NCBI GenBank assembly: GCA_002189035.1
Contig: NEEC01000286.1
Location: 1-26,038 of the forward strand
Length of the DNA: 26,038 nt
Reading direction: 5' to 3'
Source: Utricularia gibba
Taxonomy: Eukaryota > Plantae > Magnoliophyta
Positions 1 through 23,636 of this stretch are shown here, piece after piece. Made by a program: the position numbers and the translations under genes. Numbering within the stretch: position 1 is the first letter of the stretch; each line of letters begins with the position of its first letter. Below the pieces are notes generated by a model that worked only from the letters and a program-made list of their open reading frames with translations, was not told where the DNA came from and did not search any database.

Positions 1-1942
1 CATATTACCAAAATCATTTCACCTACCTTGATAATCTATTATTCTCAACATTGGATTCTAAATCCTATAGTTTACACCTTCCATATAAGTTAGGTTAAAT
101 GTGTTTTCAATAATGATTCCTAATTGAACACTTCTACTTAGATGCTGAAGATGAATTTGGATTTTCTAACATGTACTTAGTCTTTAGCCACACACGAGCA
201 AATTGACAAGAAAAATTTTAAATTAAATATCAAATAACATAATAAAATATCAACATATACAAGGATTGCATAATATTCTTTATGAAAAAGTGTTCAAGCG
301 CATACATTTGACTGTAAAATATGAAAAATATAAGAGAAAATTGGTTAAAACAACATCATTATTTAGATATTCATGTGAACCTAAGATATTGGATCAAATT
401 TTCATTCTTCATGCAACTTAAGCCTTATTTTAAGCTCGAATTCATACATTTTCAAATTCATGAATTGTTAAATTTTGATTTATCTTTAAATTGAGTCGAA
501 AATGTTATATAAATTCATAAAATATATTTTATTTTCGAAATATAGAATTAATATAAAAGATTAAAAATCAATATAGATTTAAGATACAATGATAGGTAAA
601 GTAAAAATTAGAATCTCAATAATAATAATAAAATATGTTTTAAAATGAAACAAAATAAAATCGTATATATATCATCTCATCAATCTTTAATAGAGTGTAG
701 CCTGATCGCAAGCTCTTCATTGTTGGGAGGTAAACTTTCGTTCTTTTTTCATCATTAGTTGATTTTAAACATTAATTTGAATAGAATCATTGTGATTCTC
801 ATGTTTTTTCGAATTTCACCAATTTTTGCGCATTTTTCTTTTCCAAAAAGAATAAATCCATATCACCACAAAAACTTAATCGGTTGTTGACATAACTTTG
901 GAACCATAACAACTACTATTATTATTAGTATTATCATGATTATTATTATTTAATTTGCATGTTAGGTTTCAGATGGAATGACATAAAATGCGAATGAATG
1001 CCTGGGTGACAAGCACCATGAGGCAGTCGACGCTTGACTGGACTGCAAAATTTAAAATATTAGAGTAATTTTATTCATAAAAAAATGGAAAAGAAAAACA
1101 GATTGACGGTAACGGTTCAGCTTCAGCATCTGTTGAAAAGTAGCGTCGGTGTTCCCCTCTGGTTAAACGTCACCTTCCACAGCAAACGAATGAATGACAG
1201 TGATTGCATGTGTTCAAAGTGTCTATCGTCTAACTTTCTTTGGGCCCTGACTCCACTACCGCATTATCTCGCTGAAATGGATGGACAAACTGCGATTTGA
1301 TGAATTCGATTCCAACCCATCTATAAGTTCTCTGAATTCTTTAGCTTCCTGACTCCAAAAATCAATCTTTTCGTTCCATTCTTTCTGGGTCTTTGTCTTC
1401 CCCCCGTGAAACCTGTCGGCGTGTTTTCGTGCATAGTGCAGCGCAGATTAGAGAAGAATCTGGTTTGCTTTACCACCCGCAATCTTGTTGTTTACTTTTC
1501 TGTTCAAAGATTTCGGGTAATAAATGGGAAGACATGTGCAGTGTTGTTGCATCGGGAAGTAATGATTCAGGTCTCCGGAAAAGCCTTGTCGAGTTGATGG
1601 GTTCTCATTTGTGGTAAGAAGCTCCACCGCACTTTTTTTCTTTTGGATAAGCGTTTGTGGTTAACTTTCTGTGTTCTCCCACTGATATTGGAGTTTGCAA
1701 GAAATTTGATTAGGGAATCATGTTGTTGTTTCATGAATTCTTTACTGGGACATATCCCCAACTTATGATGAGTTTCTTGGATCCAAGTTGAGAATGCAAA
1801 TGACTTTGGGTGTATGATCCTTGTTTGGGTGAAACAAGGGGTGTTGTGTTTTTTCCTGGTATTTGTTCTCTGAGCTGCTATTTTTATTGTTTTTGTCATG
1901 CAATCACTCCTTGAAGGTAAAAAGGGGCTGGTGAAGTCTCTG

Positions 1943-3489
1943 ATGGATGACAAGCAGATTGATCTGAAGAAACCTCTTATATCAGTTAGAAGACATTCTG
2001 GAAAAGGGGCATCAGTGACACATGATCGACAAGAGTCTCCCTTGGTTCTCCCTCGGCTTCCGTACTACATATCCGACCTGAAATCTGGACCTATCAGCGA
2101 TCCTGGAGCAGTGCCTTTTCAATGGGAACACAAACCTGGAAAGCCCAAGGCAGAGATAAAACCAGAACTGCGGATGGCTCCTAAGCTTCCTCCTGGCAGA
2201 TTCATTGCTGAATTCCCCTGTGGCTCAGTGAAAAGTCCATCTCCCAGTGAAGAGATTGATGATTTTGAGAAACTGCGAAGGGAAACTGAGGGAAGCAAGA
2301 GTTCTTCTGACTGTGATGACGAATATGCAGATGCACCTGATAGATTGTCCTGGACAGAATCATCTTATTTGAATTGTGGTATGAGTGACTTCTCGGATTT
2401 GGATGAGAATCTGTCACAGAAATTTCCAGCTGGTCGCATGCGAATGAGTTCATGATGAAGAGGTTTATCCCTGCAGCAAAAGCAATTGCTTCCGAGACAC
2501 CTACATATTTACCCCCAAAACAATCTCTTGCAAGAGAAAAACCATTGCAAGTGAAACAGGGATTTTTTGGCAAGCCTGAACTCAGATATGGACCTAGTTT
2601 TGCAAAGAAGTACTCTCATTTTGGTTTGGATGCAGCAATAGAAGAAGAAGAGGACGATGAAGATGATGATGAAAAGGAATGTGATTTCAACGGTAGTTTT
2701 CCTGGGTATGTGGTTTATTTTCAAATCTTTGTCTGAAGAGCCCATTTTACCTCCAAAACCATGTTCCTAGTTTGAATCTGAGATCAAGAGCATCTCTTTC
2801 TTCTGCAACTAAAACACCACCTGAGAAAGATTCAGATTCAAGTGACTCTGTAGTTGAGAAAACTGTCCTTGTTGATACTTTGCAGAAAGTGAGTAATCTG
2901 AGTTCTCCCTCCTCACCTGAAAATGAACATGAGATCACTTCGCGGATTATGAATCAGATGCATGAAACAGATTCTCCCATGGATGATAGTATCATTGATG
3001 AAGAGTGGGAAAGAACAGAGCAACAGCTTATTTCTACCATCCAAAAGAAAACAACATTTCCTGCTTACTCCCACATGAAGCATTTAGAGGTAACTCTGTC
3101 GCTATCTGCAGATGATGTGGAGAAGCATCTGCAGAGAGCAAGAACTCGGGAAACCTCCGCAGAAAATCTTCAGAGCGCCCACTTCCTCCGCCTTTACCAA
3201 AATCTCCATCGGATTCCTGGCTGTGCCGCGCTTTGCCATCACTATCAGCATCTGCTCCCCAGAAAATTTTTCGAAACCAGTGCTTGTTCCTGCAGCAAGT
3301 CCTCAAAAACTTAGTTTACCAGCAATTGGAATTCATCTAAAGTATGCGCTCTTTTACCTATGTCTGTCGGATTCTTGATATCACCTTCAGTTTCATGTTA
3401 CACTACTTCGTATCTGTTTTGGGCAGGAAAAGCTGATGAGCATACCAGAGTGTGATGAAGATCACTACAGTAGCAGCGTTCACTCTTGA
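1943..3489 (+). CDS. DUF688-family plant protein, frameshifted as assembled (probably intact in vivo)
   Basis: Family-like blocks occur in successive frames: MDDKQIDLKKPLISVRR (ATG 1943; an in-frame upstream ATG at 1898 is possible), SGPISDPGAVPFQWEHKPGKPK, EFMMKRFIPAAKAIASETP (from ~2446), VCGLFSNLCLKSPF (from 2706), PLPPPLPKSPSDSWLCRALP (from 3179). Putative intron GT3342..AG3426 and last exon EKLMSIPECDEDHYSSSVHS* (3427-3489). At least three -1 shifts (~2407-2451, GGG 2704-2706, probably CCC 3178-3180). Family assignment is from motif recall. Confidence 0.78.
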
Positions 3490-3654: not shown

Positions 3655-6137
3655 TTATGACAACTTGGAGTCTAATCCAGTATAATCAGCAGCTGTATAA
3701 GATTCAAACAGTTCTCGGATTAGCCCCTGTTTCCTTCTAGGATTGCAGCCCATATCTTTGCAGAGTTGATCATTGTACCAAATGTGAAAGCCCGCAATGC
3801 AAGCTCTCCTATACTCATTATTAACCGAGATTTTCTTCATGTACTTTCCCCACTCTTCAATGTCCTGTTCCATTTCCTTTATGCTGGGCAACGTAAACGC
3901 CCCATCTAGTAACGCCACGAGCCATTTGGAGCTCATTTCGAATGTGTAGATGTTCAAAAGAGACTCTGAATAGCCGATAACCGCCATTTGTGGATGCGTG
4001 GATGAATCATTTGCCTGTAACAAACATCATAGACTTGCAAAGTTGTAACACACATCTTACAATGAGACTCAAATACAAGCTCAAGCTAAGTAAAAGTACC
4101 TGTAGAGGGGCATCAGGGAAGTTGGAGACCGGCCGATGACGATGTCTCGGATGCTCGAGCGCGAAAACATGTTCCTGAGCTTCTCGTCTCCTTTGTATCC
4201 CGTTGCGAAGATGACTACATCTGCTACCAATGGTTGGTCCTTTTGTTCATCTAGAATCAAGCCCTCTTTGCAAAAAGAAATCTTTTTAGGCTTCTTGAAC
4301 ACAATACTTCCCGCTTCCACTTTGTCGTAGAAGTCCGATGGTATGATCATGACCTTACAAGTGGAAACATACTGCACAAATGGTTCCTTTGGAACCATGT
4401 CGTATTTCTTCAGTGGAAGCTTCCGCTTCAAATAGCTCTCCACGAACTTGGAAAGCGCCCACCTCTACAAAAAAGAGAACAGAAAATAATTTAGACCTTT
4501 GTCATTCTTCATGTTGATCAAATTTGTACCATACCATGGGACTCAACAGTGTAGCCAAGAGACCGTAAAGCAGCCCTTCACGAGGCTTATGAATCAGCAT
4601 CTCAGTAATGCGATTGAAAAGAAGAGCACCTATATCAACTCCCCGTGGAAACATGTCCGGCATCATCCACGGAATAGTTCGTTGCAACATCGTGCACGGA
4701 AGTTCGTTTCCTGGAAACCAAAAGCCGACCAAAGCTCAATTCACAATATCCCAACCTCAATCACTTTCAGAAAAATGCAATTCACCGAAAAAAACACACA
4801 GAGATTCACCAATCCTCACCGTTTGCAAGTGCACACTCGTAAGCCACATCGACGGCTGATTTATTACTGCCGATGACCACGACTCGCTTCCCTTTGATGA
4901 GCTCCAATGCGGCAGCATTGTCCATCGCGGAGTAGTCCATGGAATGCAGGACTTTCCCGGAGAATATCTCCGGTCCACGGCCATCGGGGAAGTCTGGTAT
5001 ATTCGGAAGGCCGCTAAACCTTCCGATACAGAGGACTAGGAAGTCCGCTTCATATTCCTACGGCAGAATCGCTGTAAATTGTTACTCAAGATAAACGATT
5101 TCAAATCGTAAAGAGCAATCGGCGAAAAAACATGAATTAAATTAATAATATTTTTAAAGTTAATAAAAAAATAGTCCACACTAATCATTTAACTCATTGA
5201 TGGACTCCAATTAGGGTTTCAAACGATATCAAAAGTAGGATTAAATTAGAATTTAGTTGGGTTTCAAGATTTCAATCAAAACTCTTACATAGGTTTGGTG
5301 CATAAAAACCTCATTATTTTAAATTCACCCTTTTCATACAATTAATAAGAAAGTAAAAAAGATTTTATTAAAGACACCAATGTAATTTTGATTTTAATAA
5401 TCATAAATTCAATTTTTAATAACTATTAATCAAACACAATACTTTAATAAAAAAAATGTAGTCAATAAATACATTTTTTATCTTAAATCCATAAATAAGT
5501 TTTTTAAAAAATCTAAATATTTTAAAATGATTTTATTAAAGACACCACAGCCCCACCATTCTAGTTCCTCTTCATTATTACTATTTTAGGTGATGACTAA
5601 ACTATGGTTAAATTTCTTAGTTAAAGAATATAATATAATGTTACGATATATTTAATTAATTGACTTGGGAATTTACGTGATTAAAATAAAAAAATACCTC
5701 TGTGGATTTAGATAAGGTGTCAAGAACCTGGAGCTTCCACTTGCCTTTAGATCCAAATGCCCTCCCGCTTCCTCCCCACAATTCCCATGCCACCATTTCC
5801 TCTTCGCTTTCCCCCACGTAATCCACGCTCCTCACTTTGCTGTTGAACTTGATGTAGCGCGCCAAATCGAAATGCTTGGCGTAGGAATTGACGTACTCGA
5901 GGACTTGATCCGCCGGAGGAACATCTCGTCGGCGTCGGGAGACGGCCAATCGAAATCGGAGAACCTGAAGTAGCGTTTCAGGTTCTGGAGCCGAGTCGTC
6001 TTCATCGTGTGATTCCATACCCCGCCGACTTGCCCCGCGGCTTCGAAGACCACAGGATTGAAGCCAGCGGCGGCGGCGTGCTTGCAGGCCAGGAGGCCGG
6101 CCATTCCGGCGCCGATGATCGCGACTCTCTTCTGCAT
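3655..6137 (-). CDS. FMO1: FMO1-like flavin-containing monooxygenase, copy A (5 exons; 526 aa if two -1 frameshifts are corrected)
   Basis: Exons 6137-5698, 5057-4820, 4710-4535, 4464-4100, 4014-3655, all with GT-AG introns. Motifs: GAGMAG (FAD), [11 protein letters not shown] (FMO signature), GSNKSA (NADPH), FATGY, C-terminal [17 protein letters not shown]. One G is missing at 5918-5919 and at 3992-3993 relative to copies B and C. The symbol denotes the family, not proven orthology. Confidence 0.9.
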
Positions 6138-7959
6138 TTTGACTGTTTGAGTTTGGCGCGTTAAGGGATTAGTTGCTTTGACTGGGATTTGGGGGGAAAA
6201 TGGAAGCCTCTATTTAAACCTTTTTTTGGTTGAAAGACACCACGGAATGAGTTATGTTGGCCAAGACGTCCACGTAGCACGGGTAGTTGCCATCCAAACT
6301 TTGGAAATCCAAAACCAAGCATTCTATTTATTAATTGAATTATAATTTATCATAATCATTTTTAAAATAAAAAATGCGAAACTCAAAACCGTGCACGGAC
6401 ATCTATAAACCGTTTGCCGGTCAATAATTTCAAATTCTAGTGGAATGACTATTGATTTCATATGACAATGTTTATGTTTAAGGGTGGAGCTTGGGCTTGA
6501 GCAAACTCAGCCTTGACCTAATCTTAAAAAAAATTATATGTTAATTTAATTTATATTTTACTTAGAAATCTTGTTTAACTTCATGGATTGACCAACCTTA
6601 AAAATTTTCTCAAGCTCTACCAATACTTATGTTAAATCTTGAACTGAATATTTGCATCTTATTATAATATTGTTTGGATTTCATAGGAAAATGCTTATAT
6701 TGAATGCTCAAATTTGACATTCATATGATTGCACATTCATGCAACATTGTGTACCACTCCATTCGGTGTTTGGTTTGAACTTGCAAAGGCACGACCTTCA
6801 TGCAATACTGCGTACCATTCTATCTGCTAGTAGTTTAAACTTACAAAGGATTGCAATTTCATGTAGCACTATGTAACCCTATCCAACGTTGGTTTAAAAT
6901 TGTAAAGAACAACTTCATGCAGCACTGCATAATGTTGTATCTAATATTGGTTTAAAGTTGTGGAGGACTGCAGCTTTACTCAATGGTGCATACCACTCTA
7001 TTTGATGTGGGATCAAACTTTGAAGCATTGTAGTTTTTACGTTTGCACCATTTAACACTCTATCTAGTGCTGGTTTAGACTTGCAAGATCATGTAACATG
7101 ATAATATGATGTTGGCTATAAATTGCAGATAGTTCTTTCATTATTAATTATAGACAGTTTTGATGGTTAACCAACCATGGAGTGCATGCTCGGCTATTTA
7201 ATCTCTCTAATGAGTGCTTATTGTGTCTCTTCATACCATTATTCCAAGGAGAACACACTAGTTCCACCTTCCTTTTCCTCCACATTGGACTTCTGATAAA
7301 CGAAAATCCATGTCATTGTTTAATTATGAAAATTTTGATTCAAATAAAATTTATAAAACCTAATTTTTTAGAGATACAAATCAAGCAATTGTATAGTGGA
7401 ATTAAGCTTGAACATAAGGAGTTTAATACCTATTGCATGAAATTTAATACATTCTAGTTTCAAAATCGATTTCAAGTTTAAGCAAAAACTAGCATGAATT
7501 CAATAATTGCGTGACAATAAAAATAAAGAGATAATATGTTTATAATTCTAAAAGTGGAATGTTCATTCAACTCATGTTTCAAACTAGCTCAAGATGATCT
7601 AAATCTACTCAAATCAATTATTTTTTTATTTTAATTTACTTAGGTATCCTATTTTCACCTTACCCTCAAGTCTACCATTTTATAAAATTAATAAGAATAG
7701 ATTTATTCAATCATATTAATCTCTATCCAAAAAAAATCAACTATCTAATTACATCATATATATCCATTAGTTTACCTCTAGGTTGGGTTTCCCAAGTTAG
7801 AATTATTTTTTCCCTACTAGATATATATACTAGATTGTTATGAAGATTTAAACTAGCACATTTTTCTTTTTGAATCTAGACTAAAATGACTACTTCTTCC
7901 ACATCTTCCTAAGGCATTGCTCTAATCTAGTCAATCAAACTAAAGATAAGCAAAATATC
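3985..7959. repeat. Left arm (3975 bp) of a large inverted duplication
   Basis: Reverse complement of 9409-13386. Both ends and many internal blocks were checked by eye; differences found are essentially 1-bp homopolymer indels. Confidence 0.97.
6736..7089. repeat. Degenerate minisatellite, ~6 units of 56-61 bp, upstream of FMO-A
   Basis: Units start at ~6736, 6797, 6858, 6914, ~6975 and ~7036, with consensus TTCATGCA..ACTG.GTACCA.TCTAT....TGGTTTAAACTTG.AAAG. Confidence 0.75.
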
Positions 7960-8109
7960 TTCATGAAACAAAAATAATGGTACATCCAATAGTCACAATC
8001 TTGATATAAAGAATAAAAAGAAACGAGAAGTAAAGAAAATTCTGAAAATGTCAAATAATCCATTTTGCTTCTATAGTACTATTTCTGGTTGAAAGTCGAA
8101 TTAAGAAGT

Positions 8110-8384
8110 CAGAGATTGATGGATAAATTGTTGGTAATAACCCATGAAACCATAAAACTTAGAAAGAGCTTTTAGATTTGTAGGCAATAACATAGTGTAT
8201 TGGATAAATTGTTTTCCAAAGAAACATTTTGATAGCTTAGCAAAGAGTTTGCTAGTACATTTATTCATGTTTTTTGTTGTAAACAAGAATATCATAAAAA
8301 ATATCAATAAAAACTTGTGAATATACAATAGGAAATAATATTCATGAGAGAAAAAAATATGAAGGGAGCATTCGTCAGGCCAAA
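8110..8384 (-). mobile_element. Ty3/gypsy reverse transcriptase remnant, C-terminal half (duplicated copy)
   Basis: Across frameshifts: FGLTNAP..F..LMN, HKFLLIFF.DILVYNK (degenerate catalytic motif), LFAKLSKCFFG, PTNLKALSKFYGFMGYYQQFI. Confidence 0.8.
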
Positions 8385-8990
8385 GAGATGTGAGGAAAGG
8401 ATCAAAAGAAGAAAAGATTGGACAAACACTACTCTTAAAATTTTTTGTTTGAAAAAAAAAAGCTGATGCGATCATAAATAATATAAATAAAGATAATGAA
8501 ACTGAAGAAAATAATAATACTAATCATCTCATAATTTCACTTGAGACAATTACTAGATCAATAACATGAAAAAATAAAAAAACTTATTATGAAATTGTAA
8601 ACCAATCAGAAAAACTATGAAACATATGACATTGAGTTCAACCTATTTAAATTAGATCAAGTTGAGTAAAATTGGGTTATAACATTTTAGTTCACTAACG
8701 TTGCTTTTATTTTGTGTAGGCCCATTTCCCTATTTTATTTAAAAATGGCTTCATTCTTGTTTGGAAACAATTTTGATTATAATAAATTTTGAAAATTATG
8801 CTTTTTCTTTAAGTTCTTATAGAACTTGAGACTTATGAAATTTTATTTATGATGTTTAGTGTAGTTTATTTTTTTGTTTCCTTTCATGTTTTGTGAGTAT
8901 AGTAGCATTTTCATAAATTGAGTTGCAATGATATTCATTTCTTGAGAATTAACTTCTTCTTTCATGAATTATTGTTTTATTTGAAACTTA

Positions 8991-9209
8991 GAGTATGTTT
9001 GGTAAAGCTTCTGCTTCAGTAGAAGCACTTCTAGAAGCAATTCTTAGATAAAACACGTGTTGTTCTGTTTTATATGAAGTTGAAATAATGAAGTGCTTCG
9101 ATTTTTTTTAGAAGCTAGGGTATCTCTGCTTCAAAAAAAATGAAACGTTTCTAGAACCACTTATTTGAAGTTGTTTGAAGTTTTTTCTGAAACAGTACCA
9201 AACAGACCC
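8991..9209. mobile_element. Tourist-like (PIF/Harbinger) MITE, 219 bp
   Basis: TIR GAGTATGTTTGGTA versus reverse-complemented right end GGGTCTGTTTGGTA (12/14 match); TTA target-site duplication at 8988-8990 and 9210-9212. Confidence 0.85.
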
Positions 9210-10280
9210 TTAAGATCTGATTTTCCAAAAAATTGTGGTTTGAACTATCACATCAAAAACCAATGATGACAAAAAAACATGCAGCAACACAATCTTTTAT
9301 TGAGCACACTAAGTGAGTGCATAATGAATGCAACAACAATGCTTGAATAGACAAAAAGTTGAACTAATTGTCCGAAAAAAAGTGCAACAGATCTCTGGTA
9401 AGAAATCCGATATTTTGCTTATCTTTAGTTTGATTGACTAGATTAGAGCAATGCCTTAGGAAGATGTGGAAGAAGTAGTCATTTTAGTCTAGATTCAAAA
9501 AGAAAAATGTGCTAGTTTAAATCTTCATAACAATCTAGTATATATATCTAGTAGGGAAAAAAATAATTCTAACTTGGGAAACCCAACCTAGAGGTAAACT
9601 AATGGATATATATGATGTAATTAGATAGTTGATTTTTTTGGATAGAGATTAATATGATTGAATAAATCTATTCTTATTAATTTTATAAAATGGTAGACTT
9701 GAGGGTAAGGTGAAAATAGGATACCTAAGTAAATTAAAATAAAAAAAATAATTGATTTGAGTAGATTTAGATCATCTTGAGCTAGTTTGAAACATGAGTT
9801 GAATGAACATTCCACTTTTAGAATTATAAACATATTATCTCTTTATTTTTATTGTCACGCAATTATTGAATTCATGCTAGTTTTTGCTTAAACTTGAAAT
9901 CGATTTTGAAACTAGAATGTATTAAATTTCATGCAATAGGTATTAAACTCCTTATGTTCAAGCTTAATTCCACTATACAATTGCTTGATTTGTATCTCTA
10001 AAAAATTAGGTTTTATAAATTTTATTTGAATCAAAATTTTCATAATTAAACAATGACATGGATTTTCGTTTATCAGAAGTCCAATGTGGAGGAAAAGGAA
10101 GGTGGAACTAGTGTGTTCTCCTTGGGAATAATGGTATGAAGAGACACAATAAGCACTCATTAGAGAGATTAAATAGCCGAGCATGCACTCCATGGTTGGT
10201 TAACCATCAAAACTGTCTATAATTAATAATGAAAGAACTATCTGCAATTTATAGCCAACATCATATTATCATGTTACATG

Positions 10281-10634
10281 ATCTTGCAAGTCTAAACCAG
10301 CACTAGATAGAGTGTTAAATGGTGCAACGTAAAAACTACAATGCTTCAAAGTTTGATCCCACATCAAATAGAGTGGTATGCACCATTGAGTAAAGCTGCA
10401 GTCCTCCACAACTTTAAACCAATATTAGATACAACATTATGCAGTGCTGCATGAAGTTGTTCTTTACAATTTTAAACCAACGTTGGATAGGGTTACATAG
10501 TGCTACATGAAATTGCAATCCTTTGTAAGTTTAAACTACTAGCAGATAGAATGGTACGCAGTATTGCATGAAGGTCGTGCCCTTTGCAAGTTCAAACCAA
10601 ACACCGAATGGAGTGGTACACAATGTTGCATGAA
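10281..10634. repeat. Mirror copy of the ~61-bp degenerate minisatellite, upstream of FMO-B
   Basis: Reverse complement of 6736-7089, lying inside the inverted arm. Confidence 0.72.
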
Positions 10635-10785
10635 TGTGCAATCATATGAATGTCAAATTTGAGCATTCAATATAAGCATTTTCCTATGAAATCCAAACAA
10701 TATTATAATAAGATGCAAATATTCAGTTCAAGATTTAACATAAGTATTGGTAGAGCTTGAGAAAATTTTTAAGGTTGGTCAATCC

Positions 10786-11231
10786 ATGAAGTTAAACAAG
10801 ATTTCTAAGTAAAATATAAATTAAATTAACATATAATTTTTTTTAAGATTAGGTCAAGGCTGAGTTTGCTCAAGCCCAAGCTCCACCCTTAAACATAAAC
10901 ATTGTCATATGAAATCAATAGTCATTCCACTAGAATTTGAAATTATTGACCGGCAAACGGTTTATAGATGTCCGTGCACGGTTTTGAGTTTCGCATTTTT
11001 TATTTTAAAAATGATTATGATAAATTATAATTCAATTAATAAATAGAATGCTTGGTTTTGGATTTCCAAAGTTTGGATGGCAACTACCCGTGCTACGTGG
11101 ACGTCTTGGCCAACATAACTCATTCCGTGGTGTCTTTCAACCAAAAAAAGGTTTAAATAGAGGCTTCCATTTTCCCCCCAAATCCCAGTCAAAGCAACTA
11201 ATCCCTTAACGCGCCAAACTCAAACAGTCAA
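10786..11231 (+). promoter_or_regulatory. Proximal promoter of FMO-B (mirrored upstream of A) with W-box and ACGT motifs
   Basis: TTGACY/RGTCAA at 10786, 10852, 10946, 11187 and 11226; TACGTGGACGTC at ~11094-11105; TATA-like TTTAAATA at ~11152-11159. Short motifs only; function is inferred. Confidence 0.4.
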
Positions 11232-11232
11232 A

Positions 11233-13395
11233 ATGCAGAAGAGAGTCGCGATCATCGGCGCCGGAATGGCCGGCCTCCTGGCCTGCAAGCACGCCGCCGC
11301 CGCTGGCTTCAATCCTGTGGTCTTCGAAGCCGCGGGGCAAGTCGGCGGGGTATGGAATCACACGATGAAGACGACTCGGCTCCAGAACCTGAAACGCTAC
11401 TTCAGGTTCTCCGATTTCGATTGGCCGTCTCCCGACGCCGACGAGATGTTCCCTCCGGCGGATCAAGTCCTCGAGTACGTCAATTCCTACGCCAAGCATT
11501 TCGATTTGGCGCGCTACATCAAGTTCAACAGCAAAGTGAGGAGCGTGGATTACGTGGGGGAAAGCGAAGAGGAAATGGTGGCATGGGAATTGTGGGGAGG
11601 AAGCGGGAGGGCATTTGGATCTAAAGGCAAGTGGAAGCTCCAGGTTCTTGACACCTTATCTAAATCCACAGAGGTATTTTTTTATTTTAATCACGTAAAT
11701 TCCCAAGTCAATTAATTAAATATATCGTAACATTATATTATATTCTTTAACTAAGAAATTTAACCATAGTTTAGTCATCACCTAAAATAGTAATAATGAA
11801 GAGGAACTAGAATGGTGGGGCTGTGGTGTCTTTAATAAAATCATTTTAAAAATATTAGATTTTTTAAAAAAACTTATTTATGGATTTAAGATAAAAAATG
11901 TATTTATTGACTACATTTTTTTTATTAAAGTATTGTGTTTGATTAATAGTTATTAAAAATTGAATTTATGATTATTAAAATCAAAATTACATTGGTGTCT
12001 TTAATAAAATCTTTTTTACTTTCTTATTAATTGTATGAAAAGGGTGAATTTAAAATAATGAGGTTTTTATGCACCAAACCTATGTAAGAGTTTTGATTGA
12101 AATCTTGAAACCCAACTAAATTCTAATTTAATCCTACTTTTGATATCGTTTGAAACCCTAATTGGAGTCCATCAATGAGTTAAATGATTAGTGTGGACTA
12201 TTTTTTTATTAACTTTTAAAATATTATTAATTTAATTCATGTTTTTTCGCCGATTGCTCTTTACGATTTGAAATCGTTTATCTGAGTAACAATTTACAGC
12301 GATTCTGCCGTAGGAATATGAAGCGGACTTCCTAGTCCTCTGTATCGGAAGGTTTAGCGGCCTTCCGAATATACCAGACTTCCCCGATGGCCGTGGACCG
12401 GAGATATTCTCCGGGAAAGTCCTGCATTCCATGGACTACTCCGCGATGGACAATGCTGCCGCATTGGAGCTCATCAAAGGGAAGCGAGTCGTGGTCATCG
12501 GCAGTAATAAATCAGCCGTCGATGTGGCTTACGAGTGTGCACTTGCAAACGGTGAGGATTGGTGAATCTCTGTGTGTTTTTTCGGTGAATTGCATTTTTC
12601 TGAAAGTGATTGAGGTTGGGATATTGTGAATTGAGCTTTGGTCGGCTTTTGGTTTCCAGGAAACGAACTTCCGTGCACGATGTTGCAACGAACTATTCCG
12701 TGGATGATGCCGGACATGTTTCCACGGGGAGTTGATATAGGTGCTCTTCTTTTCAATCGCATTACTGAGATGCTGATTCATAAGCCTCGTGAAGGGCTGC
12801 TTTACGGTCTCTTGGCTACACTGTTGAGTCCCATGGTATGGTACAAATTTGATCAACATGAAGAATGACAAAGGTCTAAATTATTTTCTGTTCTCTTTTT
12901 TGTAGAGGTGGGCGCTTTCCAAGTTCGTGGAGAGCTATTTGAAGCGGAAGCTTCCACTGAAGAAATACGACATGGTTCCAAAGGAACCATTTGTGCAGTA
13001 TGTTTCCACTTGTAAGGTCATGATCATACCATCGGACTTCTACGACAAAGTGGAAGCGGGAAGTATTGTGTTCAAGAAGCCTAAAAAGATTTCTTTTTGC
13101 AAAGAGGGCTTGATTCTAGATGAACAAAAGGACCAACCATTGGTAGCAGATGTAGTCATCTTCGCAACGGGATACAAAGGAGACGAGAAGCTCAGGAACA
13201 TGTTTTCGCGCTCGAGCATCCGAGACATCGTCATCGGCCGGTCTCCAACTTCCCTGATGCCCCTCTACAGGTACTTTTACTTAGCTTGAGCTTGTATTTG
13301 AGTCTCATTGTAAGATGTGTGTTACAACTTTGCAAGTCTATGATGTTTGTTACAGGCAAATGATTCATCCACGCATCCCACAAATGCTTCTATAG
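11233..13395 (+). pseudogene. FMO1: FMO1-like copy B, 3'-truncated by the rearrangement (open frame of 419 aa)
   Basis: Exons 11233-11673, 12314-12551, 12660-12835, 12906-13270, 13356-13395, in frame throughout (1260 nt). Exon 5 reads QMIHPRIPQM, crosses the junction at 13386, adds LL and stops at TAG 13393-13395. Confidence 0.88.
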
Positions 13396-14728
13396 TACTA
13401 TTTCTGGTTGAAAGTCGAATTAAGAAGTCAGAGATTGATGGATAAATTGTTGGTAATAACCCATGAAACCATAAAACTTAGAAAGAGCTTTTAGATTTGT
13501 AGGCAATAACATAGTGACGTATTGGATAAATTGTTTTCCAAAGAAACATTTTGATAGCTTAGCAAAGAGTTTGCTAGTACATTTATTCATGGTTTTGTTG
13601 TAAACAAGAATATCATAAAAAATATCAATAAAAACTTGTGAATATACAATAGGAAATAATATTCATGAGAGAAAAAAATATGAAGGGAGCATTCGTCAGG
13701 CCAAAGAGATGTGAGGAAAGGATCAAAAGAGAAAAAGATTGGACAAACACTACTCTTAAAATTTTTTGTTTGAAAAAAAAAAGCTGATGCGATCATAAAT
13801 AATATAAATAAAGATAATGAAACTGAAGAAAATAATAATACTAATCATCTCATAATTTCACTTGAGACAATTACTAGATCAATAACATGAAAAAATAAAA
13901 AACTTATTATGAAATTGTAAACCAATCAGAAAAACTATGAAACATATGACATTGAGTTCAACCTATTTAAATTAGATCAAGTTGAGTAAAATTGGGTTAT
14001 AACATTTTAGTTCACTAACGTTGCTTTTATTTTGTGTAGGCCCATTTCCCTATTTATTTAAAAATGGCTTCATTCTTGTTTGGAAACAATTTTGATTATA
14101 ATAAATTTTGAAAATTATGCTTTTTCTTTAAGTTCTTATAGAACTTGAGACTTATGAAATTTTATTTATGATGTTTAGTGTAGTTTATTTTTTTTGTTTC
14201 CTTTCATGTTTTGTGAGTATAGTAGCATTTTCATAAATTGAGTTGCAATGATATTCATTTCTTGAGAATTAACTTCTTCTTTCATGAATTATTGTTTTAT
14301 TTGAAACTTAGAGTATGTTTGGTAAAGCTTCTGCTTCAGTAGAAGCACTTCTAGAAGCAATTCTTAGATAAAACACGTGTTGTTCTGTTTTATATGAAGT
14401 TGAAATAATGAAGTGCTTCGATTTTTTTAGAAGCTAGGGTATCTCTGCTTCAAAAAAAATGAAACGTTTCTAGAACCACTTATTTGAAGTTGTTTGAAGT
14501 TGTTTTCTGAAACAGTACCAAACAGACCCTTAAGATCTGATTTTCCAAAAAATTGTGGTTTGAACTATCACATCAAAAACCAATGATGACAAAAAAACAT
14601 GCAGCAACACAATCTTTTATTGAGCACACTAAGTGAGTGCATAATGAATGCAACAACAATGCTTGAATAGACAAAAAGTTGAACTAATTGTCCGAAAAAA
14701 AGTGCAACAGATCTCTGGTAAGAAATCC
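13385..14728. repeat. Direct repeat D, copy 2 (1344 bp)
   Basis: Matches 8066-9408; diverges from copy 1 after AGAAATCC (14728). Confidence 0.97.
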
Positions 14729-15600
14729 ACTAATTATTCAACTACAATAACAGCATTCCTTGATCAACATAAGTGAATGTTTCTTGGGTCCGTTGGCTTA
14801 TTTGATTGAATGAAGATCACATGTGTTGACAATGGCATGAAAAAGTACTCATAATGTTCAAGAAAGATGGAAAAACTTGTTTTAAGCACATCATCAAGTG
14901 GATGCGAATTTGAAAAACTGGAACATAAATCAAGTTTAAAAATGTAAATTACCCCATGTAATTCATCAAGGAGATTATCAGCCAAAGGGATTGGCAAACA
15001 ATCATTTGGTGAGAAGTTATATGAGTGGTACAGTGCTTGACTTCAAATATATAACTCGGGTCAATTTATGGTGCGAGTAAAGTCCATGCCTCCAATTCAT
15101 TGCATTTGACTCTTCAAGTGGTGACTGCTAACGATGGTTACTTTGAAGTCATTTCACAAGTCACAAAATAAATTACTGAAAAGCTTGATGTAGAAGAAGG
15201 ATGAAAGCTAGTGATTTGGGAGTGGAGGTGCTCATAACAATCAATATAATCTACAAATGTTTCTGTTTGTAAGAGTTTCATGAACTCAATGAGAACTTGT
15301 ATGGTATGCAAATCATCAAACTCTTAGGAAATCTGAAGAAAATTCCACCCAATTACATGATGAGTGAAGAGATTTGTAGCCCATCTAGCTAAGCATTTGC
15401 TGCCTCATAAAATGCAATACTAGAATCAGCCAACCAAGACCTCTCTTGAAGTGAGAGTAACAGATTGATTAGAGTTAGCAAATCGCTAATGGTTGAAATG
15501 AGCAAATGCAGCAAGGGACTAGGGTTAAAGCATTCTTAGGCTTTCTCTTGAGCAAATCGTTATTGGGTAATAGCATCCTTTTCATCCAAAAGTGCAGTCT
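13430..15600 (-). mobile_element. Decayed Ty3/gypsy retrotransposon (gag and split RT)
   Basis: gag-like EFMKLLQTETFVDYIDCYEHL (~15230-15290); RT N-half PIPLADNLLDELHGVIYIFKLDL...HYEYFFMP (14997-14833); RT C-half resuming at FGLTNAP (13705). Order on the minus strand is collinear. Outer limits are approximate and no LTRs were recognised. Confidence 0.78.
14311..14529. mobile_element. Tourist-like MITE, copy within repeat D2
   Basis: Same TIRs and TTA TSD as 8991-9209; duplicated passively with segment D. Confidence 0.85.
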
Positions 15601-15707
15601 TTAGGATTGGGGACTTCACAACATCACATGCAACGTTTTTATAAAGCGCAATTCACAGAGAGTTGCTACTAAGTGCAACAAAGTCAATGTTTTTCATACA
15701 TTAGAAC

Positions 15708-18589
15708 TTATAAGGACCTGGAGGAGCCCAATCCAGCATAATCAGCAGCTGTGTAAGATTCAAACAACTCTCTGATTAACCCTTGTTTCCTTCTAGGATT
15801 GCAGCCCATATCTTTGCAGAGTTTGTCATTGTACCAAGTATGAAAACCCGCAATGCAAGCTCTCCTATACTCATTATTAATGGTATATTTCTTCATGCAC
15901 TTTCCCCATTCTTCAATGTCATGTTCCATTTCCTTTATGCTAGGCAATGCAAATGCCCCATCCAGAAATGACACGAGCCATTTGGAGTTCATTTCGAATG
16001 TGTAGATGTTGGAAAGAGACTCTGAATAGCCGATGACCGCCATTTGCGGGATGCACGGATGAATCATCTGTCTGCAACACACATCATAGACTTGCTAGTG
16101 TTTCAGTGAGAAGTCCCATATACTACAAGCTCATGTTTATGTACAAGTACCTGTAGAGGGGCATCAGGGAAGTTGGAGACCGGCCGATGACGATGTCTCG
16201 GATACTCGAGCGCGAAAACATGTTCCTGAGCTTCTCGTCTCCTTTGTATCCTGTTGCGAAGATGACAACATCTGCTACCAATGGATGCTCGTTTTGTTCA
16301 TCGAATATCAAGCCCTCTTTACAAAAAGACATCCTCTGAGGCTTCTTGAACACAATGCTTCCCTCTTCCACCTTGTCGTAGAAGTCTGCTGGTACGATCA
16401 TGACCTTACAAGTGGAACCATGGAGGACAAATGGTTCCTTTGGAACCATGTCGTACTTCTTCAATGGAAGCTTACACTTTAAATAGCTCTCCACAAACTT
16501 GGAAAACGCCCACCTCTACAAAAGGAGAGGAGAACATAAGTTGAACCTCTGTCATCCCTTATGCGGATCAAACTTTTAGCGTACCATGGGACTCAGCAGT
16601 GTAGCCATCACACTGTAAAGCAGCCCTTCACGAGGCTTATGAATCAAGATCTCAGTCATGCGATTGAAAAGAAAAGGACCTATAGGAACTCCCCAGGGAT
16701 ACATGTCCGGCAGCATCCACGGAATAGTTCTCTGCACCATCGTGCACGGAAATTCATTTCCTGGAAGCCCAAAACCCTACCAACGCTCATTCAGAGTATC
16801 CCAACCTCAATCACTTTCAGACATATGCAATTCACCGACAAACACACTCACAGAGTTACCAATCCTCACCGTTTGCAAGTGCACACTCGTAAGCCACGTC
16901 GACGGCTGATTTATTACAGCCGATGACGACGACTCGCTTCCATTTGATGAGCTCCAATGCGGCAGCATTGTCCATTGCGGAGTAGTCCATGGAATGCAGG
17001 ACTTGCCCGGAGAATATTTCAGGTCCGCAGCCATCGGCGAACTCTGGTGTATTCGGAAGGCCGCTGAATCGTCCGATGCAGAGGACCAGGAAGTCCGCTT
17101 CGAACTCCTGCCGCCAAATCCCAAATTTTTGTACAAAATCTTAAAATTAATAATTTTTTGTAATATTTTATAAGTTTTTTGGTAATTTTTTATGAATAAT
17201 CATTCAAATATATTTCGTTTCCATATTTACACGCTCGTTACATTACATCACCATATAACTATGTTTTGAAATCACTAAGTTAATCGATTGGGGGTACTTT
17301 GGTATATTCATATTACTTTAACCTAATTAAAATAACTCATTTCAATAGTAAATTAATTTCAAAAACCAAATCAATTAAATAACCTAACAATAGCATTATA
17401 ATTTACGATTCAGATTAAATGTTCAATTTTCGTTGTTCTTTCTTATTTAATTTAATTTCTCGTATCATGAGTCTATTTAAATATTTTTTTATCTTATTGA
17501 AGGTAAGTTATTTGGATAATATTTTTGTATTGAAATCGATTATTTGGTTAGAAATATTGTTGATTAATATTTATCTACAAATTATATAAATGTTACAAAA
17601 ATTAAAATAATACATTTTTTAACTTGTTGAAGTCAAGTTTGACTAACATGAAGTAACCGTTCGATTTTAAATCATAACTACACGTAGTGTTCGATTGATG
17701 AGATTGAATGAGTTTAAAAGTATAATTATGAATTATAAGATGTTAATTTCATAGATTAAAATATATCTAGTATTCCATGGATTTTTTTTTAATTTCATGT
17801 ACATAGGGTTTATTTAAAACCATATACCCTTTTTTTTTACTTAATACTACTTAATCCCAATTGTAATCTCAATAACTATACGTTCTTTAAAAAATTAATC
17901 CGCCTATATCAACTATATTTAAATTCAAATAAATTAAACTATTTCTTTTTTATCTCATAACTGTTGTACCGTGTGTTCATTCAATATTATTATTACTATT
18001 TTAGGTGATGACTAAACTATGGTTAAATTTCTTAGTTAAAGAATATAATATAGATTTAATTAATTGACTTTTAAATTTACGTATACTGATGGATTAAATA
18101 AAAAGGTTATCGGAAACGGTAAAAAGGAGGAGCGGTTAATAAAACGTACCTGGGTGGATTCAGATATGGTATCAAGAACCTGGAGCTTCCACTTGCCTTT
18201 AGATCCAAATGCCTTCCCGCATCCTCCCACAATTCCCATGCCTCCATTTCCTCTTCGCTTTCCCCCACGTAATCCACGCTCCTCACTTTGCTGTTGAACT
18301 TGATGTACCGCGCCAAATCGAAATGCTTGGCGTAGGAATTGAGATACTCGAGGACTTGATCCGCCGGAGGGAACATATCGTCGGTGTTGGGAGACGGCCA
18401 ATCGAAATCGGAGAACCTGAAGTAGCGTTTACGGTTCTGGAGCCGAGTTGTTTCCATCGTGTGATTCCATACCCCGCCGACTTGCCCCGCGGCTTCGAAT
18501 ACCACCGGATTGAAGCCAGCGGCGGCGGCGTGCTTGCAGGCCAGGAGGCCGGCCATTCCGGCGCCGACGATCGCGACTCTCTTCTCCAT
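15708..18589 (-). CDS. FMO1: FMO1-like flavin-containing monooxygenase, copy C (527 aa if one -1 frameshift is corrected)
   Basis: Exons 18589-18150, 17107-16870, 16760-16585, 16515-16151, 16071-15708 (GT-AG). Motifs [31 protein letters not shown] at 18226-18228, where A and B have four, breaks the WGG codons in exon 1. Confidence 0.9.
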
Positions 18590-18993: not shown

Positions 18994-19680
18994 ATGGCGA
19001 CGGTTGATTTAATCAAATGCTGTTTAGAATCTATTCGACAGGTGAGTTGAGATTTTTTTTTTTTTTTTTGTTTTGGTTTGCTTTTTCCTGTGTGTGGTTA
19101 TTTGCTTTCTGTTTTCCCCTTTCTCTCTGGTAATGTTGTTCGTTTTTTTTTTCTGTTTCCTCGGGTTTGCAGATATCGGATCACATTGATGACGCAGTAA
19201 TTTATTTAGATGCGGGAAGTACGGAAGCTTTCCAAATAATTGGGGCTTACCCTTTGTTTCTGGAGCTTGGTGCTCGAGCTGTTGCTAGCTTAAAGAGCAT
19301 GTTGGCTCTTGATAAAGTGAAACATTTATGGTGCCATTTGATTCATTGATTTTGTTTTTATTTTGTAACTTTTATGTGAGCTTTAGTGACGCTTTGGCTG
19401 AAAATTTTTCATCTCTTGCATTGTTTCCTGTGATTTCTTATGGTTGGTGCCATTTGATTCATTGATTATTTTGTAACTTTTATGTGAGCTTTAGTGACGC
19501 TTTGGCTGAAAATTGTTAATCTCTTGCATTGTTTCCTGTGATTTCTTATGGCTGTTGCCCTCTAGGTGGTTGGTTGGGGAAGCAATCCTGGTCACGTGAC
19601 GAAAATCGTTGTGTTCACATCACGCTTTCCGAGTGATGCACATAGATATATTTTATGATGTCTGAATATGCTTCAAATTG
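18994..19680 (+). pseudogene. MIP3: 5' fragment of Sec1-family domain protein MIP3 (MAG2-interacting protein 3)-like gene
   Basis: Exon 1 18994-19041 MATVDLIKCCLESIRQ; exon 2 19173-19316 ISDHIDDAVIYLDAGSTEAFQIIGAYPLFLELGARAVASL; exon 3 from 19566 VVGWGSNPGHVTKIVVFTSRFPSDAHRYIL*CL, with TGA at 19656-19658 where CGA (Arg) is expected. Recognisable homology ends near 19680 and no further exons were seen. Identity is from recall of the MIP3 N-terminus. Confidence 0.8.
19329..19551. repeat. Tandem duplication (115 bp + 107 bp) in MIP3 intron 2
   Basis: TGGTGCCATTTGATTCATTGATT...GTGATTTCTTATGG at 19329-19443 and 19445-19551. Confidence 0.9.
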
Positions 19681-21631: not shown

Positions 21632-23636
21632 TAGTGTTGGGCACGAATTGTGCCCAACTAGTTGTGGGCAAGGCCCAACAAATTTGTTAATCCAACATGT
21701 ACAACCTATAGGCCAAATTTTCGTTTGGATTCATAAGTGGGTTGGTCCCATGGGTTTTAATTAAACCCAACCCAACCTGTGGCCTGAAGACCAATTAATG
21801 GGTTCACGATGGATGACCCAATATTTTAAAAAATATTTTTAAATTTATATTTTTAGTTTTAACTCAAATTATATTAAATATTTAAATCCTAATAATTATA
21901 AAGTAATATTTTTATAAAATATATAAAAATAGGACTATGACTCTCATTTTATTAATTTATCCTCACTTTTGACTGAATAATACCATAATACAAATGTTTG
22001 AAAATAAAAATAAAAACATAAAAAACTCCTAATACCATGTACTATTCGTCTTCTTCATATTCCTCTTCAGAACTTGATGCATAATATTGTAATTTATTCT
22101 TCCTCCTTGCCACATCATTTCAATTTTTTCAAACATATACATGCCTTCAATGTGTCAAGAACAAATTTTGATCTTTTCTTAATAAGCATTCTCCACTAGC
22201 ACTAAATGCACGGTTGAAATTGGAGTACATCTTTGGCCATCTTAACCAAGATTGGAAAATTTATAACATTGCTTTTCCACCATATTAGTAAATCAAACGA
22301 ATCATCATCATTACCTTCAACAATAGGCGCATTGTGTTGTAAAAAATATATTCTCCATGTGAACTAGAGAATTGGGAGGATGAACTACATTTGCTACGAA
22401 CTAAAGTAATAGGATGAATAACAAAAGAGCATGAAGAAAAAGATGAAGGAATAAAAACATTTACCATAGACATATTTGATGCACCATGCTCAATTTCATG
22501 TAATGAAAACATAGCTTGAATATTCAAAATTGCTTACCTATTCATTTTAAGAACATCAATAAAAACATAAAGTAGAGTTTTCTATCTTTTTTCCTTTAAT
22601 CTAGAATCCAAACTAGTTGCAACAAGATATAATTGAAGAATTTTATCATAATATTTTCAATTTTTTTTTTGCATATCACCTATTATACTATCAAATGGAG
22701 GCTCCCGAGAGCACTTATAAAAAACATACGAAATGCGAACAACTCCTTGAAGAATTAAATGTATAGTAAGAAAATATGAAGTGCTTAGCAAATTAGTACA
22801 AGAATATATTCTACCAGATCGACCTTTTACCATTACCTGCAACACCAGAAGAATTAGAATCCGTAGTTTTAGAATCAACTTGTAAGTCTTCATCTGAGTC
22901 CAAGTCATCCAAATCTATGTCATTATTATCAATGGATTGTTTGAGGAATGAAAAGATCATATTCCATCCATATCGAAATCTGAAAAATAAAAAAAACTCA
23001 TATTTACATATTCTTAATACTTAATTGAAGACTCATATTAATAAATTGAAGATTTTAAAAAAATCAAGCTAGATATAATCAAACAAAATCCATGATACAG
23101 ATTCAGTATATATCAACAAAACGTGAAATTATGTAAATACTTAAAAAAAGAAAAAATATAAATAAAATTAAAAAAATTCCAACTTCAGATGGATCAAAAA
23201 TATGCAAACAATGGTGAAAATGAATCAAAATTATGTGGCTATTGTTAGATTGCGATCAAAATATCCTTTTGAATCTAAACAATATGGCTAGGGTTGAATG
23301 GTGATTCCAAAATTCAAAATATTCTGTTTTGATATGTGTTAAATTGGGTTTTGAATTTTGGATCAAAAAGAATTATCCATAGAATTATTTTGGATTGATG
23401 TGTCAACTCGTGGCTCAACGGGTTTGTTCTTATATGTGTTAAAATTGGTTTTGAATTTTGGACTGAAACAAATTATCCACCAAAGAATTATTTTGGACTG
23501 ATGTGTCAATTTGTGGTCCAATGGGTCTGACCCGTTAGGGTCATGTGTTGATTTGGCTCAATCCATCAACTTTCTAAGACAGGTTGACCCATGGACTAGA
23601 CTCATTCATATGGGTACAAAAAGATTAGTAAACCTA
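21632..23636 (-). mobile_element. Internally deleted hAT DNA transposon remnant
   Basis: Dimerisation-domain relic FDLLIWWKSNVINFPILVKMAKDVL..PISTV..AFSASG...LDTLKACICL (~22305-22125); DUF4413-like DMQKK..KYYDKILQLYLVATSLDSR (~22680-22600); CCCAA/GGGT-rich subterminal-like blocks at ~21636-21820 and ~23400-23620. TIRs and TSD not resolved, so the limits are approximate. Confidence 0.72.
23332..23530. repeat. Two diverged ~100-bp tandem units
   Basis: ATATGTGTTAAA.TGGTTTTGAATTTTGGA...AGAATTATTTTGGA.TGATGTGTCAA starting at 23332 and 23432. Confidence 0.85.

Follow-up and report, generated by a model that had tools for sequence, protein, structure and literature searches.

A probably recent, 3ʹ-truncated duplicate of a candidate FMO1-like gene facing its paralog in Utricularia gibba

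Genes and repeats at the locus

The window analyzed is a 26,038-nucleotide stretch of Utricularia gibba DNA (contig NEEC01000286.1, assembly GCA_002189035.1) that contains the flavin-containing monooxygenase (FMO) genes A, B, and C and a DUF688 gene, together with the repeats that join them (Table 1). The DUF688 gene is recognized by Pfam PF05097, with model positions 1-147 matched in one frame (E 5e-34) and 161-239 in the next (E 9e-11). No annotated MIRNA or snoRNA lies in the window, since Rfam (gathering threshold) and ARAGORN returned no matches over its whole length.

Table 1. Features of the FMO locus, in positions of the window
Feature	Position	Strand	Remarks
DUF688 gene	1898..3314	+	convergent with FMO-A; one-base frameshift ~2440-2452
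FMO-A	3655..6137	-	full-length, 5 exons, ~528 codons
Inverted-repeat left arm	3985..7959		A gene and 1.8 kb of upstream DNA
A/B palindrome spacer	7960..9408		single-copy segment 7960-8065 and X 8066-9408
Inverted-repeat right arm	9409..13386		copy B with its promoter
FMO-B	11233..13395	+	exons 1-4 open, exon 5 stub, TAG stop
B exon 1	11233-11676	+	
B exon 2	12314-12551	+	
B exon 3	12660-12835	+	
B exon 4	12906-13270	+	
B exon 5	13356-13386	+	cut after 31 nt
B arm of proposed hairpin	12320..13386	+	exon 2 to exon 5 stub, including short introns 2-4
B-C loop	13387..16040		2654 nt, 33% GC; X' (to 14728) and unique DNA
FMO-C	15708..18589	-	full-length paralog, 87-89% identity to A/B
C arm of proposed hairpin	16041..17101	+	antisense of C exons 2-5

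Protein and family searches, run exon by exon, place these genes among the FMOs. The FMO-like family PF00743 was matched by exon 1 (E 1e-16), exon 2 (E 1e-5), and exon 5 of A (E 4e-5). The N-terminal FAD-binding GxGxxG is present as GAGMAG in exon 1, and the 11-residue FMO motif FxGxxxHxxxY is found in exon 2. The predicted products would carry an FMO-like domain with both FAD-binding and FMO motifs. The best matches come from Lamiales at 68% identity; the best with a name is a Sesamum radiatum protein, "putative flavin-containing monooxygenase 2", with 68% identity over exon 1, the comparison being one of exon-length fragments only. The genes are candidate clade-I (FMO1-like) flavin monooxygenases; Arabidopsis FMO1, a pipecolate N-hydroxylase, is contrasted with the YUCCA and S-oxygenating clades. 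A search of the literature found no paper tying Utricularia gibba to flavin-containing monooxygenases.

Copy B and its 3ʹ end

An earlier note on this DNA had described B as keeping its upstream DNA and exons 1-4 and losing most of exon 5 at 13386, and the gene model bears this out. The ATG at 11233 (+ strand) is preceded by 1824 nt of duplicated DNA (9409-11232) copied from the upstream region of A, and 31 nt of exon 5 are left. The copied segment includes the full putative promoter region of A, with a TATA-like box that is also conserved in C. In all, 418 of the ~528 FMO codons are retained; after two codons of post-junction sequence, the frame is closed by a TAG stop at 13393-13395. An RNA made from the copied promoter would encode a 420-residue protein without the C-terminal 110 residues, which is probably inactive.

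The same note called B "terminator-less", a description that stands for the native 3ʹ UTR, which is lost, but not for the DNA that replaced it, which supplies the early stop and carries ordinary poly(A)-type signals. On the + strand of the B-C spacer, AATAAA occurs at 13627, 13807, 13894, 14100, and 15167, a count at chance level (5 observed, 4.8 expected). The first of these lies 241 nt downstream of the junction and has upstream of it UG-rich motifs of the TTTTGTTGTAA type that are FUE-like (far-upstream-element) at the motif level. At the 3ʹ end of A itself, AATAAA follows the stop codon by ~155 nt, and in sequence the context of B's first downstream AATAAA resembles that end. Plant poly(A) signals are in general loose and A/U-rich (PMC10082929). 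To judge from motifs only, a B RNA, if transcribed, would most likely end at cryptic poly(A) sites in the AT-rich relic, no more than a few hundred nucleotides downstream.

The nature of this relic is suggested by a - strand ORF in the spacer (14767-15042), whose only PDB matches are Ty3 RT structures (4ol8 and 7q5b, E 0.085); this weak match points to a decayed Ty3/gypsy RT on that strand. Pfam gave no match for the spacer ORFs. A second spacer ORF matched a repeat protein only and was set aside as a chance hit.

Origin of copy B

Self-BLAST identifies A, not C, as the closest partner of B. The two lie head-to-head in an inverted repeat of 3.98 kb (3985-7959 vs 13386-9409) with 99.65% identity, and only 15 columns differ: 11 are one-base homopolymer indels, and 4 bases are substituted. 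A further repeat is in direct orientation, with X (8066-9408) and X' (13385-14728) sharing 99.1% identity. Of the two junctions, the first (9408/9409) is blunt and the second (13386) has TG microhomology. The gypsy RT relic continues across 14728/14729 without a break, which marks the joining of X' to 14729 as ancestral.

In the proposed history, A and C were at first two functional flavin monooxygenase genes, candidates for clade I (FMO1-like), standing in tandem in the order DUF688 > < FMO-A - gypsy relic - < FMO-C. One two-junction event, by replication template switching or end joining, would have placed an inverted copy of 3985-7959 after segment X and then resumed at the start of X, giving the present order A - g - X - B - X' - C. 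On this account, B faces C tail-to-tail only because A and C already stood in tandem, and the B-C geometry is a by-product of the rearrangement, since B is one arm of a near-identical repeat of A. Codon-by-codon counts within exons gave Ka/Ks = 0.25 and Ks = 0.24 for A/B vs C. These values indicate that A/B and C evolved under purifying selection and so form an old functional pair; the arms that B and C could contribute to a hairpin were therefore 13% diverged from the birth of B, and their mismatch would be the old A-C divergence.

Rearrangements of similar form are familiar from human DUP-NML-INV/DUP and DUP-TRP/INV-DUP, which have two junctions, an inverted duplicated segment, a single-copy spacer, and 0-2 bp of microhomology. 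The U. gibba locus shares with them the two junctions, the inverted duplicated segment set apart from its source by a single-copy spacer, the direct duplication of a neighboring segment, and the 0-2 bp of microhomology. It differs in being from a plant, in its scale (kb, not 100 kb), and in involving no pre-existing inverted low-copy repeats.

The junctions are known from a single noisy long-read-type assembly. Indels of one base are common in it, as the one-base frameshifts in both the DUF688 gene and C (a deletion in the exon 1 G run, ~18228) attest; A has one-base deletions relative to B in exon 1 (5918) and exon 5 (3992). A and B are identical within the noise level of the assembly, and one-base frameshifts and young-repeat differences at that level are not to be read as biology. 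The copy, or its link to C, might itself be an assembly artefact, such that there is no inverted duplicate or that [X-B] belongs elsewhere or in another copy number and was mis-joined. Such an error would fit A/B differences that do not rise above noise, in an assembly with about one indel per 700 nt, and the near-identical 1.34-kb X/X' repeat is one through which sequences could be mis-joined or [X-B]n collapsed. Nevertheless, it is judged unlikely. The structure is not the spacer-less fold-back of missed-adapter or chimeric reads, as it has a spacer of 1449 nt and two junctions that are clean and differ from each other, TG microhomology being present at one of them, and it lies inside the window, bordered by unique sequence at either end. 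Moreover, both novel junctions must occur in reads however X is resolved. An exact 31-nt pattern common to A and B just before the junction had no match in the metagenome contigs scanned.

The reading we favor, with moderate confidence, is that B is an incidental, very young, 3ʹ-truncated duplicate of FMO-A and not a dedicated silencing device.

Potential for double-stranded RNA between B and C

The earlier note had proposed that B and C form a natural hairpin locus, and the geometry that it gave was recovered in full. B faces C on the opposite strand, and self-BLAST and a repeat finder both pair 13386 with 16041 around a loop of 2654 nt (~2.65 kb in the note). The inverted arms (12320-13386 vs 17101-16041) are 87.2% identical over 1075 nt by self-BLAST, which also found a second inverted match of 88.8% over 597 nt (11090-11686 vs 18709-18138). 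The perfect runs of 59 and 47 nt reported for exon 4 were located at 13218-13276 and 13170-13216, and longer ones lie beyond them: exon 1 has two, of 61 and 64 nt, and intron 1 has one of 64 nt. Exact B/C matches of at least 20 nt number 17 (20-64 nt), and 359 21-mers are shared. Across 1069 columns, the arms could form 922 Watson-Crick and 27 G:U pairs; the predicted duplex has uninterrupted helices of up to 62 bp and an energy of about -1680 kcal/mol. The locus places two arms from one gene family in inverted orientation on a single DNA molecule, and the dsRNA that they are predicted to form would contain perfect stretches of at least 21 nt with matches to family members. The intron block of 64 nt, conserved without a mismatch, was also considered as a small-RNA gene, a reading dropped when neither strand gave a fold signal.

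From this geometry it was proposed that transcription of B continues across the 2.65-kb spacer and into antisense C, and that DCL enzymes cut the resulting imperfect hairpin, 1.07 kb long with a further 0.6 kb, to 21-22-nt siRNAs with a dominant silencing effect on A, B, C, and possibly FMO1 relatives at unlinked sites. Variants of the proposal draw the dsRNA from inter-molecular pairing of convergent B and C transcripts or from RDR6 copying of poorly terminated B RNA. The shared 21-mers and long helices of the B/C arms speak for it, as do a B promoter copy identical to that of A, the missing native 3ʹ UTR, and the perfect match to A that any B-arm siRNA would have. U. gibba has DCL1, DCL2, DCL4, and two RDR6 genes, and 21-nt sRNAs dominate in its described libraries (PMC8333044). 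Precedents exist in GmIRCHS (PMC3406792), in PAI1-PAI4 (PMC3203196), and in the feeding of RDR6 by transcripts that read through (PMC10082929). However, the B/C arms are only 87% alike, and the spacer is long, AT-rich, and supplied with many poly(A) signals, where that of GmIRCHS is 78 bp between perfect arms (PMC3406792). Selection cannot have shaped so young an arrangement, and U. gibba, in which DCL3 is truncated, would give only weak 24-nt/RdDM output (PMC8333044). The key step, Pol II running 2.65 kb past the junction into antisense C, is possible but is not favored by the sequence, and the proposal as a whole is considered improbable.

A different source of dsRNA would be the A/B palindrome rather than the B-C pair. 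Transcripts from outside, reading through from C (- strand) or from the DUF688 gene (+ strand), would fold into a near-perfect 3.98-kb hairpin with both promoters inside it. Its arms share 99.65% identity around a loop of 1.45 kb, C and the DUF688 gene both point into the palindrome, and the - strand has no AATAAA for 1087 nt after the C stop codon. Such transcripts would nonetheless have to pass the native 3ʹ end of C or DUF688 and continue for several kb, and the transcription of A and B is itself directed out of the palindrome; this source is regarded as very unlikely.

Comparison with known silencing loci

The closest parallel in form is rice Lgc1 (low glutelin content 1; Kusaba et al. 2003), in which a rearrangement reportedly removed the 3ʹ end of one family member and left it tail-to-tail with a paralog. 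Read-through there is said to give a hairpin, siRNAs, and dominant silencing, with both the siRNAs and the dominant phenotype demonstrated. B and C show the same arrangement of a 3ʹ-truncated gene-family member tail-to-tail with a paralog, for which the silencing route is a proposal only; they differ in arms that are 87% alike and in the 2.65 kb of AT-rich retroelement relic with poly(A) signals between them.

Inverted duplication has also reportedly been recognized as an origin of small-RNA genes (proto-MIRNA; Allen et al. 2004), and B, an inverted copy of a target gene, could likewise give rise to small RNAs directed at its own family. However, young loci of that kind start near-perfect and are transcribed as one unit, whereas the B/C arms were 13% diverged from the outset and belong to separate genes with their own promoters.

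In soybean GmIRCHS, an inverted repeat of truncated or pseudogene copies stands behind a working promoter, with arms of 1087 bp compared with 1075 nt for B/C, where the promoter is a copy of presumed activity (PMC3406792). Unlike B/C, GmIRCHS has perfect arms, a 78-bp spacer, and the foreign GmJ1 promoter, and its read-through dsRNA has been detected experimentally (PMC3406792). PAI1-PAI4 of Arabidopsis Ws is, like B and C, a tail-to-tail inverted pair of paralogs, but the PAI arms are near-identical and adjacent, and the outcome is H3K9me2 and DNA methylation of unlinked copies (PMC3203196), a pathway reported to be weak in U. gibba (PMC8333044).

Evidence from PAI1-PAI4 bears directly on read-through. 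A minority of transcripts passing a working terminator suffices for silencing, and a new poly(A) site at the repeat center weakens it (PMC3203196). Because only minority read-through is needed, some dsRNA could come from B despite the cryptic poly(A) sites; with the weakening by a central poly(A) site set against this, the sequence by itself is compatible with either outcome. In the plant literature, no paper was found tying FMO1 to inverted-repeat siRNAs.

Implications

Silencing at this locus would be of a known kind (Lgc1, GmIRCHS, PAI1-PAI4), and the mechanism is possible but unsupported. The full conjunction, in which the B junction is a real segregating haplotype and read-through into C or RDR6 copying yields 21-22-nt siRNAs that dominantly silence A and C, is given very little credence. 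For now, the locus is most likely an ordinary structural variant. As such, it shows with clear resolution how a truncated gene copy can be set beside its paralog by a two-junction inverted duplication. If the silencing proposal were true, a single template-switch event would have created a dominant loss-of-function haplotype, and an FMO1-type family would be added to the few that have natural hairpin alleles (glutelin, CHS, PAI). A complex rearrangement would then have produced, in one step, a naturally occurring knock-down allele in a carnivorous plant, acting on a gene family of defence metabolism.

Three FMO copies and the truncation of FMO-B

A five-exon flavin-containing monooxygenase (FMO) gene occurs in three copies in the window: A and C, which are full-length, and B, which is truncated at its 3ʹ end. 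In searches run exon by exon, each exon serving as a separate query, the Pfam FMO-like model PF00743 matches exon 1 (E 1e-16) and, more weakly, exons 2 and 5; GAGMAG plus an 11-residue motif are visible directly in the translations. Among named proteins, the best match to exon 1 comes from a Sesamum 'putative flavin-containing monooxygenase 2' (68% identity), and the remaining named matches take in more Lamiales. As the earlier note reported, B is cut in exon 5 at 13386; this exon, which starts at 13356, retains 31 nt, leaving 418 of ~528 codons, and a TAG stop lies two codons past the junction. Upstream of FMO-C are two short tandem duplications, 19329-19559 and 23325-23529 (periods ~108 nt and ~100 nt, 82-92% identity). 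Additionally, an ORF at 24314-24616 (+ strand) with no significant Pfam match may correspond to the RNase H region of a Ty1/copia polyprotein.

Features of the FMO locus
Feature	Position	Strand	Remark
FMO copy A	ATG 6137 to stop 3655	-	
FMO copy B	ATG 11233	+	
FMO-B exons 1-4	11233-11676, 12314-12551, 12660-12835, 12906-13270	+	
FMO copy C	ATG 18589 to stop 15708	-	
DUF688 gene	1898-3314	+	convergent with A
A/B inverted-repeat arms	3985-7959 vs 13386-9409		99.65% identity
X	8066-9408		
X'	13385-14728		direct copy of X, 99.1%
B-C main arms	12320-13386 vs 17101-16041		inverted, 87.2%, 1075 nt
Second B-C match	11090-11686 vs 18709-18138		inverted, 88.8%
AATAAA on B's strand in the B-C spacer	13627, 13807, 13894, 14100, 15167	+	

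Origin of FMO-B

FMO-B is probably an incidental truncated duplicate made by a very recent complex rearrangement. A 3.98-kb inverted repeat has A and its upstream region as left arm and B as right arm. The repeat X sits inside the spacer of this A/B palindrome and its direct copy X' follows B, giving the layout A - g - X - B - X' - unique DNA - C, where g is a single-copy segment. The two novel junctions are 9408/9409, which is blunt, and 13386, which has TG microhomology. A scan of metagenome contigs with the exact 31-nt A/B pattern just before the junction gave no match.

The spacer between the B and C arms appears to be a decayed Ty3/gypsy reverse-transcriptase (RT) relic on the - strand; Ty3 RT is the sole PDB match, a weak one (E 0.085), of the ORF at 14767-15042 (- strand), and a Pfam search of the spacer ORFs gave no match. 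RT motifs, which we take by eye to be present in the X' ORFs (13423-13792, - strand), continue from this ORF. If that recognition is right, the relic crosses 14728/14729, so X'-14729 would be the ancestral adjacency and the ancestor would have been A - g - X - unique DNA - C, a tandem pair. The putative relic occupies both the B-C spacer (13387-15323, - strand) and the A/B palindrome's loop (8066-9408).

A and B differ at 15 columns, comprising 11 one-base homopolymer indels and four substituted bases; genuine divergence is expected to have the opposite indel:substitution ratio. One-base frameshifts are found in the DUF688 gene (~2440-2452, with the Pfam model resuming in another frame), in C exon 1 (~18228, G4 to G3) and in A exons 1 and 5 (5918 and 3992, C3 to C2), those in A and C falling in short G/C runs, and they point to assembly indel noise rather than pseudogenes. 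Together, the indel-dominated differences and the frameshifts in three genes indicate about one assembly indel per 700 nt, so A and B can be regarded as the same sequence. This points to a very recent rearrangement, to homogenisation by gene conversion or to an artefact; the last of these, either faulty assembly or a mis-link through X, is unlikely.

Between A/B and C, Ks is 0.24 and Ka/Ks 0.25, counted codon by codon within exons, with zero in-frame stops. A and C thus represent a gene pair that is old and under purifying selection, and the frameshifts seen in these two copies are most likely errors. When B originated, its arm and that of C were therefore already separated by 13% divergence. 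The tail-to-tail geometry of B and C is a by-product that selection has had no time to shape. Ks is uneven, at 0.10 in exon 1 (11233-11676) and 0.44 in exon 5 (3655-4014 / 15711-16071), and past gene conversion between tandem paralogs may account for this. Furthermore, a 64-nt block of intron 1 (11734-11797, 17989-18052, 5574-5637) is 100% identical in all three copies; outside it intron 1 is unalignable, and A/B and C are only ~87% alike. Neither strand of this block gave a fold signal, and Rfam had no match to it; it may be a regulatory element within the intron or a tract of gene conversion.

Inverted arms and the 3ʹ end of FMO-B

The earlier note proposed that B read-through into antisense C could yield hairpin dsRNA and siRNAs against the FMO1 family. 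Its figures were all borne out on recheck, including the ~2.65-kb loop with 13386 opposite 16041 (2654 nt) and perfect B-C runs of 59 and 47 nt (13218-13276 and 13170-13216). Longer perfect runs (61, 64 and 64 nt) lie in exon 1 and intron 1, and B and C have 359 21-mers in common. As RNA, the main arms are predicted to form 922 Watson-Crick and 27 G:U pairs over 1069 columns, with an energy of ~-1680 kcal/mol and a longest unbroken helix of 62 bp. Silencing is a reasonable hypothesis and belongs to a known class, and this geometry is the one feature that suggests it; the hypothesis is weakest where it requires transcripts to cross the spacer, and silencing by any RNA route is quite unlikely.

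B was described as terminator-less, and its own 3ʹ UTR is indeed lost, but the replacement carries poly(A)-type signals (AATAAA and TTTTGTTGTAA-type motifs). The sequence now 3ʹ of B is 33% GC. AATAAA is undepleted in the spacer on B's strand (5 observed vs 4.8 expected from shuffles), and the first, 241 nt past the B junction, is preceded by TTTTGTTGTAA-type motifs, an arrangement similar to A's own 3ʹ end, where AATAAA lies ~155 nt past the stop codon. In plants, poly(A) signals are loosely defined, consisting of a U/UG-rich far-upstream and an A-rich near-upstream element, with AAUAAA present at only ~10% of sites (PMC10082929). Given such looseness, and judging from these motifs, the AT-rich spacer likely terminates many B transcripts well short of 16041.

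Routes to dsRNA and likely outcome

The literature on read-through silencing points both ways. At Arabidopsis PAI1-PAI4, most transcripts terminate normally and a minority reading through suffices for silencing, whereas a new central poly(A) site reduces it (PMC3203196). Soybean GmIRCHS has perfect arms 78 bp apart and detected read-through dsRNA (PMC3406792), in contrast to the 87.2% arms and 2654-nt loop here. RDR6 can also be fed by poorly terminated RNAs (PMC10082929).

Transcription of A and B runs out of the palindrome that they form. RNA entering from outside would be needed for the perfect 3.98-kb hairpin; read-through from C (- strand) or DUF688 (+ strand) could provide it, and no AATAAA occurs on the - strand for 1087 nt downstream of the C stop. 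Within the locus, an FMO promoter could drive only one hairpin, that from B to C. siRNAs from the B arm, if made, would match A perfectly. U. gibba has DCL1-4, with DCL3 truncated, and two RDR6 genes; 21-nt sRNAs predominate and CHH methylation is low (PMC8333044). With these features, any silencing outcome would more plausibly be post-transcriptional, through 21-22-nt siRNAs, than RdDM.
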